Positions 1,999-5,168 of a DNA stretch of 64,000 nt are shown here, one piece after another (within the stretch, counting starts at the first letter, position 1; every line of letters begins with the position of its first letter). The translations under genes and the position numbers were made by a program. The notes under the pieces were generated by a model. It was not told where the DNA came from and did no database searches. It worked only from the letters and a program-made list of their open reading frames with translations. The stretch lies in assembly GCA_048013815.1 (NCBI GenBank), contig CM106585.1, positions 6,324,001-6,388,000 on the forward strand, in the 5' to 3' direction. Origin of the DNA: Setoptus koraiensis (taxonomy: Eukaryota > Animalia > Arthropoda).

Positions 1999-2847
1999 AT
2001 GGCCAGCATAAAGGCGCTCAGACTCTACTCACAATTTATCCAGAGCAATAGAAGAACAGCGAGCTATAGTTGCTGTCTTACATATCTAAATAGAAAGCTA
2101 TGTGGTGATAGATTAGCTAGATTGTTAGCTACATCATCGGCAGTCAACTGTCCCACTAGTAACTTCAAGCCAAGTGAAGTGATGGCAAAGGAACGATACG
2201 ATCTGAGATCTGGGGAAGACACAGAAACAAAACGATCCCGACTATTGTATCAAAGCAGAAAACGTGGCATGCTCGAAAACGGACTCATACTCGCTTCCTT
2301 TGCCGACAAGTATCTCCATGGATTGGACGCCGAGCAACTAGATCAATATGATCGTCTCATAAATTTGCCCACCAACGATTGGGACATTTACTATTGGGCC
2401 ACCAAGACCAAACCTACACCCGAGGAGTTTGAAACACCTATTATGACAAAATTGCGCGATCATCTCAATCTAAAGGTGAGTGAAAGCCCAGAATTATTTC
2501 CTAGCTTTCATAAGAATGGAAGCTATCTTGATGATACGAACACAACAGAGATTGCAAACGACTATGTCGAACAAGATGACAATAGACTCGCCTATGTGGA
2601 TCCAAATCATCCTGTGGATTTAGATCTAGATCCGAGAACCATCGATATAACTAATCCGGAGACCATATTCTCAGATCACGTAATCAAATTACCTGGCAAT
2701 CAGACAATGGTAAAGATGACGAAGTGGAGGAAGGATTTTTTTCTAAAACGAATGCGTCGAACGATGCCAGCTCCTGTATCCTTGACTGGTCTCGGCGACG
2801 GAAGCAATCCAAGGTGTGAATCGAAAAATGAATTTGAGTTCACCTGA
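1999..2847 (+). CDS. SDHAF2: Succinate dehydrogenase assembly factor 2 (Sdh5 family) with ~110-aa C-terminal extension
   Basis: Basic N-terminal targeting-like peptide; [25 protein letters not shown] and [10 protein letters not shown] hallmark motifs. Confidence 0.93.
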
Positions 2848-2931
2848 CACTATTATTGGCTCATAGTTAAATAACATAGAGATTATATATTTCAACTACT
2901 AATACATCCTGATCTGTCTTGTTATCTTTAG

Positions 2932-5113
2932 GTTCTGGACGCAAAAAATTCGGGAGATAGTGGAAAGGGTTGGAACCCAAAATAATCGACGTAGCAACGA
3001 TCGTATAGATTCTGGTTTGGAGTTTTCATCTTCTCTTATTTGGATGATTGAAAATGAGCCAGAAATTGTAAAGAGAGACAATCCCGAGATCTACGAATTA
3101 TATCACAAAAAACAAGAGCTAGAAGAACTACAAAAAAACATCGATATTGAACGCAACACTAATCTGATAAATGAGATTTCTAGATTTCCTCACATTATCT
3201 CGGAAGTCATATTGGAAGAAAAAAACAAATTAATCGTGGACAGTAGTAGAAAAGCTAAACATTTAATTGGGTTGGAGAACGAAACTGAGACCACTAATAA
3301 CAGGCCATTTTTGTTGGAAGGGCAATGTCCAAGATTTGCAATCACTGGCGAGGTCGATGAAGACTTCGATAAATACTTAAAGCATCACAACATACTTCAA
3401 GAAATATCTATAAAGCAAACAACAGGAGATGCTGAGGAATATGACAGGGAAATAGAGGCCTGGGCCGATTCATTATGGCACAGAAACTACGGCTCCTCTG
3501 ACTTGTACATGCCACCAAGTAAAATTCCATGTGGAGGTTGTGGTGCGGTCCTGCATTGTAGCGACCCTGGAATCCCTGGTTTTCTACCGAAGGAACTTTA
3601 CACAAGTCATATGAATGACGGTTCAAACGAGGATGGTCTTTTAGGAAAAAAGTGTCAGCGATGTAAGTTCATGGATACTTACAATGTAGCTCTAGATGTA
3701 AATGTGTCGAGATTCGATTACGCTAACTTGATGAGTCACCTCAAGAAAGATCCTCATGCCGTGGTAGTGCTTCTGGTAGATATTTTAGATTTTCCATGTA
3801 GTGTGTGGCCTGGTATCTTGGACGTTATAGGACCCAATAGAAAAGTTTACGTAGTTGGCAACAAAGTCGACCTTCTCCCCAAAGATTCTGATGATTACTT
3901 GGAACGAGTCAAAGAATCATTAGAACTCAGCTTACGAACTCGTCTACGATGGGATGATCGTAATCTTCAATTGGCTGATGTATCTCTAATAAGTGCTAAG
4001 ACCGGCTTTGGAATAGAACATCTCATAACAAAACTTATAAATGCACATGTCACGCAACGAAATATCTATTTGGTAGGTTGCACCAATGTTGGGAAATCTA
4101 CTTTTTTCAACACACTACTGCAGTCAGATCTATGTGGAATACGTGAAAACGACATTATTACTCGCGCATCAACTAGTGTATGGCCGGGAACAACTTTGAA
4201 CATACTGAAGTTTCCAATCGCTAAATTTCAAGGTTGGCAATTGGAGTTGCGTAAGGCCCGCCTCATCAGACAACAGCGCAAAAAGAAAACTGAAATATTG
4301 AGGATGGCAAGCCTCTCTCAACGTCGACAAAAATCGACCCCTCATATGTCGATGTTGATCGAGAGAGTTGAACCTAGCTTTAAGAGTAAAATACCAGTGA
4401 GAATGGAGAGTGGTCATCCGATGTCGGACAAAGTTTTAGAGATAAGCAAATTAAGGCCTTTCGACGCGACAAGTGCAAGATTTTCCAATCATAGTTTTTT
4501 TCATGATACCCCTGGTACCTGTCATAGTGATCAGATCTTGGACCTACTCACCTCAGAAGAGTTGCTGAGGGCCATGCCACGAGAAACAATCATACCTCGA
4601 ACATTCACGATGAGACCATTACATTCATTATTTATATCTGGATTGGCGAGGATAGATGTGCTGACATCAACGTCTAGCATCTGGCTGACTGTATTTGCTT
4701 CTAATTATCTTCCCATACACATTGTCGAAACTAAGGAGGCTGAGCGTTTCTATTACACCTATCTAGGAACATCGTACCTGGGAGTGCCCTTAGGTAACAA
4801 AAAACGTTTTGAATCTTGGCCAGAGTTACAAAGTTTACCACATGAGCATACCTACGAAATTCGTGGAACGATAAAAGGTTGGAAAGAAGGTATATGCGAC
4901 ATAGTACTATCGAATGCAGGGTGGATACTCGTAACGACAGGTCCCGATCAAGATTGTATAATAAAGGCGTTCACTCCCGAGGGTCGAGGAATACACCGAC
5001 GAGATCGGCCTCTTCTCCCCGAAGCGTGCCACTTGAAAGGAAAACGCATAAGGGATACACCGTGTTACAACAATTCCTTCTACAGTGTGGATCAGATGCA
5101 AGTGCCTAGATAA
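2932..5113 (+). CDS. NOA1: Nitric oxide-associated 1 / mitochondrial circularly permuted GTPase; exon starts at acceptor 2931
   Basis: Zinc-binding CGGCG..C and CQRC; G4 NKVD, G5 SAK, G1 GCTNVGKS, G3 DTPG in permuted order. Branch-like TACTAAT and CTTTAG acceptor at 2896-2931. Confidence 0.93.
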
Positions 5114-5122
5114 CTCAATATG

Positions 5123-5168
5123 TAACTGTAATAAATTTAGTCCACTAAACTGTAATACACTAGTCCAC
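5123..5168 (+). repeat. Imperfect 23-nt tandem duplication just after NOA1 stop
   Basis: TAACTGTAATAAATTTAGTCCAC followed by TAAACTGTAATACACTAGTCCAC. Confidence 0.7.

Follow-up and report, generated by a model that had tools for sequence, protein, structure and literature searches.

In the mite Setoptus koraiensis, one conserved gene probably gives rise to two protein outputs, either SDHAF2 alone or an SDHAF2-NOA1 fusion. SDHAF2 is a factor of complex II flavinylation and NOA1 a GTPase of mitoribosome assembly. The gene is located on the + strand of a stretch of 64,000 nucleotides (nt), called here the window (assembly GCA_048013815.1, contig CM106585.1, positions 6,324,001 to 6,388,000 of the forward strand); coordinates are those of the window unless a relative is named. 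A first examination of the DNA by a model, called here the sequence-only reading, had proposed that the open reading frame (ORF) of SDHAF2 is joined by splicing to that of NOA1 and encodes a protein of about 1000 amino acids (aa) made of SDHAF2, a linker and NOA1. This proposal is now supported by conservation throughout a clade of mites, by selection acting on the linker, by relatives in which both proteins share a single ORF and by database entries from Aceria. Furthermore, the coding sequence holds a conserved internal splice donor, through which SDHAF2 could be made alone.

One Reading Frame for SDHAF2 and NOA1

The SDHAF2 ORF (1999-2847, + strand, 282 aa) does not stop after its Sdh5 domain (PF03937) but runs for about 123 further codons. 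The domain is found at aa 80-155 with 91.7 bits for a cut-off of 27 and covers profile positions 1-75 of 76, so that the continuation announced by the sequence-only reading is borne out by both direct reading and Pfam. This part of the protein has 1441 homologues at E<=1e-10, named SDHAF2. Its first 60 aa are rich in Ser and Thr and contain 9 Lys/Arg for 2 Asp/Glu.

Exon 1 can end at 2813, within AAG/GTGTGA (the slash marks the exon boundary here and below), and an acceptor AG preceded by a branch-like TACTAAT is found downstream. Removal of the 118 nt between them puts the SDHAF2 ORF in frame with the GTPase ORF of NOA1 (frame 2933-5113, stop TAA at 5111-5113). The 2813/2932 junction is in phase 2 and its AG+G encodes Arg, followed by FWTQKIREIV in the NOA1 frame. 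The spliced coding sequence has 2997 nt, encodes 998 aa and contains no internal stop. Direct reading confirmed all the coordinates proposed for this splice, as well as the Arg join.

The identity of the second module is also clear. The NOA1 part has 516 homologues, and those that bear a name are called NOA1; the best named matches come from mites, ticks and insects, with E down to 1e-191. The ORF matches MMR_HSR1 with 29.8 bits (cut-off 21.9), while PF21516 (YqeH-like_C), which most NOA1 homologues carry in precomputed Pfam annotations, reaches 25.2 bits, slightly below its cut-off of 27.7. The translation displays the motifs in the permuted order: Cys pairs resembling a zinc finger (CGGCG...CQRC), then G4 (NKxD, in VGNKVDLL) before G1 (GxxxxGKS, in GCTNVGKST), then G3 (DxxG, in HDTPG). 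The two modules are clear orthologues of stand-alone proteins; stand-alone SDHAF2 of other arthropods are 45-82% identical over the domain and stand-alone NOA1 are 40-51% identical. In ordinary SDHAF2, ..NK is followed by a tail of about 12-17 aa, which is replaced in the fused gene.

As the sequence-only reading had remarked, the NOA1 exon comes without its own leader: no Met occurs in frame between residues 149 and 237 of the fusion. Between 1500 and 5600, AATAAA or ATTAAA occurs only at 4960 and 5130. There is none between 1999 and 4960, which disfavours a separate 3' end of SDHAF2 near 2850. A poly(A) signal after 2847, which had been set beforehand as an argument against a joint gene, was therefore not found. 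The AATAAA at 5130 is probably common to all isoforms.

Distribution and Origin of the Fusion

A search of related mites, as suggested by the sequence-only reading, found the fused architecture both with and without the intron. Two genomic contigs, L001 (NOA1 part 86% identical to that of the window) and L002 (48%), show an extended Sdh5 ORF, an intron and NOA1. Their introns, of 126 and 123 nt respectively, interrupt the same codon in the same phase as in the window, and their spliced ORFs are intact (1004 and 980 aa). Because the structure, the intron phase and the intact spliced ORF all recur in L001 and L002, this architecture goes beyond chance. Six other fused genomic loci were examined and all six are a single uninterrupted ORF. 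They can be regarded as genomic since their contigs reach 91 kb and some of them hold neighbouring genes. At the protein level, among the best 120 of the 516 NOA1 matches, precomputed Pfam annotations place an Sdh5 domain together with NOA1 domains in 11 further mite proteins, 766-1093 aa long, one of which is from the eriophyid Aceria tosichella (UniRef100_A0A6G1SF84). The 1093-aa product called on L010 has about 240 codons ahead of the probable start of SDHAF2 (629-1390 of this contig), which is probably due to an over-extended ORF call rather than to a genuine extension of the N-terminus.

In a maximum-likelihood tree of NOA1, the window groups with L001, then with L002, then with all the single-ORF fusions, and these sequences form one clade with a support of 100 in the Shimodaira-Hasegawa-like approximate likelihood ratio test (SH-aLRT). 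The unfused NOA1 of Halotydeus, Oppia, Dinothrombium/Leptotrombidium, ticks and insects fall outside this clade. As all the fused forms of NOA1 group together, the tree points to a single origin of the fusion. In Halotydeus, NOA1 comes with a leader of its own and without SDHAF2 next to it. In the basal eriophyoid Fragariocoptes setiger, SDHAF2 is unfused and ends with its own stop, followed by a gene on the opposite strand.

Selection on the Linker

Selection was estimated by comparing the window with L001. The ratio of nonsynonymous to synonymous substitution rates (dN/dS) is 0.05 for the Sdh5 core (aa 60-159) and 0.07 for the GTPase and C-terminal part of NOA1. The linker that joins them is made of two halves with different behaviours. 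Over aa 160-197, the proportions of nonsynonymous (pN) and synonymous (pS) differences are 0.23 and 0.27, i.e. nearly neutral. The length and sequence of this half differ in all relatives, yet the frame is open in 9 species and, against L001, all the indels are in-frame. Over aa 198-272, pN is 0.054 and pS 0.368 (p=2.8e-07), with a dN/dS of about 0.06. The part of this second half that lies upstream of the ATG at 2707 (aa 198-236) has a pN of 0.105 for a pS of 0.437 (p=3e-4), while in the remainder (aa 237-272) pN is 0, the 36 residues being all identical to those of L001 despite 7 synonymous changes. The neighbouring intron (2814-2931) includes an in-frame stop at 2845-2847, is 71% identical to its L001 counterpart and differs from it by indels of lengths not divisible by three (118 vs 126 nt).

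In unfused NOA1 from Oppia, Halotydeus, Leptotrombidium and many more mites, the conserved half has its homologue in the N-terminal block. The pattern of this block, ..W[RQ]K..R.RR.LP.P[VI]SLTGLG..P.[FY]W.., continues across the 2813/2932 splice junction, and the junction peptide of the fusion matches unspliced, unfused NOA1 of other mites such as Oppia. In unfused mite NOA1, the block is preceded by a leader-like N-terminus of its own. In the fused gene, it can be translated only as the continuation of SDHAF2, because of the lack of in-frame Met mentioned above. Comparison of these sequences thus supports the conserved linker half as coding and under purifying selection. It also supports the replacement of the ancestral NOA1 leader by SDHAF2 and an acidic spacer in the lineage of the window. 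The Met of an MT.W motif is invariant in sequences of the fused clade and is replaced by Leu or Ile in unfused mite NOA1; furthermore, the 26 residues that begin at Met237 comprise 8 Lys/Arg for 1 Asp/Glu. Met237/Met240 (2707-2718) may be a back-up start codon that arose with the fusion.

A Conserved Splice Donor inside the Coding Sequence

The Sdh5 domain is immediately followed by K-V-S, whose codons are AAG GTG AGT in 9 of 9 species and make a perfect donor, AAG/GTGAGT (donor 1, at 2476). Among eight lineages that have diverged to synonymous saturation, 181 alignment columns have an invariant residue with degenerate codons. Only 6 of them are also invariant in their codon, and K-V-S provides three of these six. 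From the codon usage of each gene, the AAG GTG AGT triplet would be expected at a frequency of 0.016-0.033 per species. The unfused SDHAF2 of Fragariocoptes has neither KVS nor GT at this position, and no GTGAGT. Donor 1 (GTGAGT) is stronger than the donor at 2814 (donor 2, GTGTGA), and since donor 2 is the weaker one, both products are plausible in the window.

The use of donor 1 is supported by sequences from relatives. Searching with the SDHAF2 part alone retrieved short proteins that follow the fusion up to ..HLNSK and then end with DLLT and a stop. One of them, P0122 from Aceria tosichella (UniRef100_A0A6G1SJG9), has 161 aa, and its first 157 show no difference from P0034, the fusion entry of 879 aa. 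Another, P0121, is encoded by a Logan contig of 924 nt, L012, which reads AAG/GATCTCCTTACTTAG, beyond which the last ~115 codons of NOA1 follow in another frame and make up its 3' untranslated sequence. Two blocks of L012 align to the genomic contig L010 (230-566 to 1430-1766 and 564-914 to 3562-3912), and the 1798 nt of L010 skipped between them have exactly the GTGAGT donor and an AG as their ends.

This deep acceptor is located within the coding sequence of NOA1, at F-L/I-G (TTYYTAG/GA), and is present in 5 of 6 eriophyid-type loci, where it leads to tails of the type [DE]LL[TS] followed by a stop. In L006 and L008-L011, it fits the tail of DLLT type that was observed. Looking for an acceptor at the position of the lost second intron of eriophyid-type loci, with a polypyrimidine filter, gave nothing convincing; the true acceptor was located only through the DLLT tail derived from transcripts. 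These comparisons support a scheme in which, in eriophyid-type mites, the unspliced message would encode the fusion and the message deprived of ~1.8-2.0 kb of ORF sequence would encode SDHAF2 alone.

Two other sequences deserve a mention. In L003 (5190-5240), the F-L-G acceptor is absent, CTC GGC being found for YTA GGA, and a pyrimidine-rich TAG occurs four codons downstream; this TAG is a candidate shifted acceptor that may give a different SDHAF2 tail. The protein fragment P0123 (JGI, 157 aa) agrees with the fusion over KVS and the linker as far as ..DLTNYKA, after which its residues are unrelated, a change that may reflect a further splice variant or the end of a contig.

Proposed Splice Choice in the Window

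In the branch of the window, the partner of donor 1 is probably the acceptor that precedes 2932. All three species of this branch (the window, L001 and L002) keep the second intron with a good acceptor, and the deep acceptor of eriophyid-type mites is absent from L001 and L002; the pairing is proposed for these two reasons. The product would have 159 + 17 residues, and the equivalent tails would count 17 codons in L001 and 7 in L002. At the site of the deep acceptor, the window has an AG (4765-4766). This AG was not relied on as a partner of donor 1, its absence at that site in L001 and L002 making its use doubtful.

The features characteristic of alternative splicing, i.e. a shared leader exon and a splice choice, are thus encountered in the relatives only, the window displaying the conserved donor alone. 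Expression and isoform ratio in Setoptus koraiensis are inferred.

According to the mechanism proposed, transcription would start upstream of 1999 and stop beyond the AATAAA at 5130, and the first exon would encode a leader of mitochondrial type and the complete SDHAF2 (Sdh5) domain. When donor 1 is skipped, reading would continue through the acidic spacer and the N-terminal block of NOA1; donor 2 would then be spliced to 2932, leading to the 998-aa fusion. NOA1, devoid of its own leader, would enter mitochondria on that of SDHAF2, an import proposed because the N-terminus is basic and the leader of NOA1 has been lost. When donor 1 is used, the NOA1 part would be skipped or put out of frame and a short SDHAF2 would be produced, most likely the 176-aa form via 2932.

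Alternative Explanations

It is extremely improbable that the region 2476-2813 is an intron or an untranslated sequence, open by chance, and that the in-frame join is a coincidence or an artefact of ORF reading. The nearly neutral first half of the linker is what would be expected in such a case, but it is followed by a half in which amino acids are strongly constrained while synonymous sites change. Moreover, the frame is held in 9 species, whereas the real intron next to it shows a stop and frame-breaking indels. The existence of two overlapping but separate genes deserves more attention, although it is unlikely. SDHAF2 would then have its own mRNA, encoding either the 282 aa up to 2847 or the spliced short form, and NOA1 would be expressed from a promoter internal to the linker, starting at Met237/Met240 (MVKMTKWRK...) and using the basic stretch as leader, so that the fused protein would never be made. 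The invariance of the Met of MT.W in the fused clade and the leader-like composition of the residues that follow Met237 agree with this, and RNA does not oppose it, as the runs examined contained no reads. It accounts poorly, however, for the purifying selection on residues 198-236, which are upstream of Met237, are homologous to the N-terminal block of unfused NOA1 and have an in-frame start only at the Mets of SDHAF2. Neither does it explain why the variable half stays open in all 9 species despite large changes in length, and it is also opposed by the 879-aa fusion entry of Aceria and by the lack of poly(A) signal after 2847. The start of NOA1 at the ATG at 2707, which the sequence-only reading had offered as its alternative, is disfavoured as the origin of the protein; as the start of an additional product, it may still be used.

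A cleaved precursor is a more serious competitor, which we regard as possible, if somewhat short of an even chance. The fusion would be the sole functional precursor of NOA1, a tandem polyprotein cut by a matrix peptidase in or near R.RR..P.S, which would free SDHAF2 with its spacer and mature NOA1, donor 1 serving only to tune the amount of extra SDHAF2. Fungal Arg5,6 and fission-yeast Rsm22-Cox11 provide parallels for such a precursor. The conserved basic stretch comes directly after the acidic, unconstrained spacer and resembles an internal leader, but the R.RR.LP.P[VI]SLTG block sits about 100 residues inside unfused NOA1 and so may belong to the mature protein. The SDH2-RPS14 precursor of grasses, in which processing takes place between the two modules (PMC1543663), is an analogy that would also favour a cleavage.

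Several observations weigh against one gene with two outputs, which remains the preferred explanation. The RNA origin of L012 is argued only from its clean GT..AG deletion relative to genomic loci, and the Aceria proteins P0122 and P0034 are taken as isoforms from database entries. As the deep acceptor of eriophyid-type mites is not kept in L001 and L002, donor 1 is paired with 2932 by deduction only. Donor 2 is weak, being GTGTGA in the window and GTCCTT in L002. The conserved Met of MT.W and the basic stretch leave room for an additional internal start. Lastly, the four RNA runs examined contained 0 reads and hence provide no test of splicing here. DNA runs X4-X24, which share their label with these RNA runs, contain 40-63% of the words of the stretch, and this label is probably that of a host or of a mixed sample, or else a wrong one given to DNA runs with the mite in them.

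Features of the Locus and Its Neighbourhood

Table 1. Elements of the SDHAF2-NOA1 gene in the window
Feature	Position	Strand	Basis
Shared 5' coding exon: putative basic leader (aa 1-59) and SDHAF2/Sdh5 domain, ending at Lys159	1999..2475	+	Pfam; dN/dS of aa 60-159 against L001
Alternative donor 1, AAG/GTGAGT, phase 0; read as Val-Ser if unused	2476..2481	+	Identical in 9 species
Variable acidic linker (aa 160-197), open in frame	2476..2589	+	pN/pS against L001; in-frame indels
Conserved linker half (aa 198-272), counterpart of the N-terminal block ancestral to acariform NOA1, including the basic stretch and VSLTGLGDG	2590..2813	+	pN/pS; homology to unfused NOA1
Intron of 118 nt: donor 2 GTGTGA, TACTAAT at 2897-2903, AG at 2930-2931	2814..2931	+	Position and phase kept in L001 and L002
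NOA1 exon, circularly permuted GTPase of YqeH type	2932..5113	+	Pfam; homologues; dN/dS
Predicted tail of the short SDHAF2-only form: 17 codons in the other frame, TAA at 2983-2985, 176 aa in total	2932..2985	+	Pairing deduced
Site homologous to the deep acceptor of eriophyid-type mites (F/Y-L-G, TAG/GA); predicted 8-codon tail, stop at 4791-4793	4765..4793	+	Homology to the acceptor of relatives
AATAAA poly(A) signal, 17 nt past the NOA1 stop	5130..5135	+	Motif search

Upstream of SDHAF2, the window carries the C-terminal part of a vitellogenin-like gene with a VWD-type end (9-1232, + strand), and the same neighbour is found in L001 (379-4605). The eriophyid-type loci L003, L008 and probably L011 have instead an LLGL-type gene with WD40 repeats upstream, on the opposite strand. 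An inverted repeat with arms of 53 nt, 81% complementary and 6 nt apart, is located at 1550-1661, between the vitellogenin-like gene and the start of SDHAF2. It could be a hairpin or the remnant of a small transposon near the promoter.

Relation to Known Systems

The best-known parallel is the nuclear sdh2-rps14 gene of grasses (rice, maize, wheat), in which alternative splicing of one transcript leads either to SDH2 or to a chimera of the SDH2 leader and RPS14 that is later processed (Kubo et al. 1999 and Figueroa et al. 1999, as summarised in PMC1543663). As far as this summary goes, grasses have one transcription unit giving two mitochondrial proteins by alternative splicing, with a common first exon that carries the targeting peptide, and the mite locus would be built alike. 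In the same way, both associate a protein related to succinate dehydrogenase with a protein related to the mitoribosome, and the chimera of grasses carries a part of the first protein.

The differences are nevertheless numerous. According to the same summary, rps14 of grasses sits within an intron of sdh2, which has its own downstream exon. In the mites, SDHAF2 is without a last exon of its own and its tail would consist of a few out-of-frame codons from the NOA1 coding sequence. The segment to be removed is itself ORF sequence, of ~0.46 kb in the window and ~1.8-2.0 kb in eriophyid-type relatives, and in one branch the acceptor is within the reading frame of the second protein. The partners are assembly factors in mites, for a subunit and a ribosomal protein in grasses. 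Finally, the mite gene belongs to an animal and, unlike sdh2-rps14, did not originate by transfer from organelle to nucleus.

Other comparisons can be made. Exitrons are exonic introns that code for protein. Like them, the mite locus has a stretch that would be translated in one isoform and spliced from another, with a donor that doubles as codons; unlike them, the removable stretch holds nearly the whole second protein in relatives, and its removal shifts the frame and ends the protein, rather than leaving a product shortened internally. The fungal Arg5,6 (arg-6) and fission-yeast Rsm22-Cox11 proteins are tandem mitochondrial precursors that are cleaved after import. They resemble the mite fusion in that two matrix proteins are encoded by one ORF behind one leader. 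Their cleavage has been demonstrated, whereas that of the mite fusion is hypothetical, and they are not known to use a conserved internal donor to yield the first protein alone.

The sequence-only reading knew of no such fusion. This holds for the literature, where searching brought up unrelated reviews but no paper on an SDHAF2-NOA1 fusion and where the genome papers of Aculops and Aceria do not mention it. It does not hold for databases, as the fusion is already present, unremarked, in the automatic annotation of UniProt and JGI.

Biological Significance

It seems rather likely that the gall-type mite lineage swapped the leader of NOA1 for the whole of SDHAF2 and kept AAG/GTGAGT, at once codons and splice donor, over a very long period as a switch between SDHAF2 alone and the fusion, and that the intron-poor eriophyid branch removes about 1.8-2.0 kb of ORF sequence to land on an acceptor internal to NOA1, with four codons in the other frame. 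This would tie both supplies to one promoter and one splice decision, and may be one case of a genome-wide sharing of mitochondrial leaders in genomes of such small size.

If so, the locus would be a clean animal case of two unrelated mitochondrial proteins placed under one leader and one promoter and chosen by a coding splice donor, while the best-known parallel, sdh2-rps14, belongs to grasses and was born of an organelle gene transfer. For streamlined genomes, it would be an example of intron loss that, in one branch, apparently forced a new acceptor inside the coding sequence of another protein. Concerning annotation, ORF-based callers split the gene in the intron-bearing species and label the intronless product of 850-1090 aa just "SDHAF2". 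The locus could be used as a marker of the clade and as a natural system for studying how a strong distal 5' splice site competes with a weak proximal one. More generally, the joining of these two genes suggests that complex II assembly and mitoribosome biogenesis are connected. If the proposed switch is real, a factor of complex II flavinylation and a GTPase of mitoribosome assembly would have their supplies tied together in these mites.

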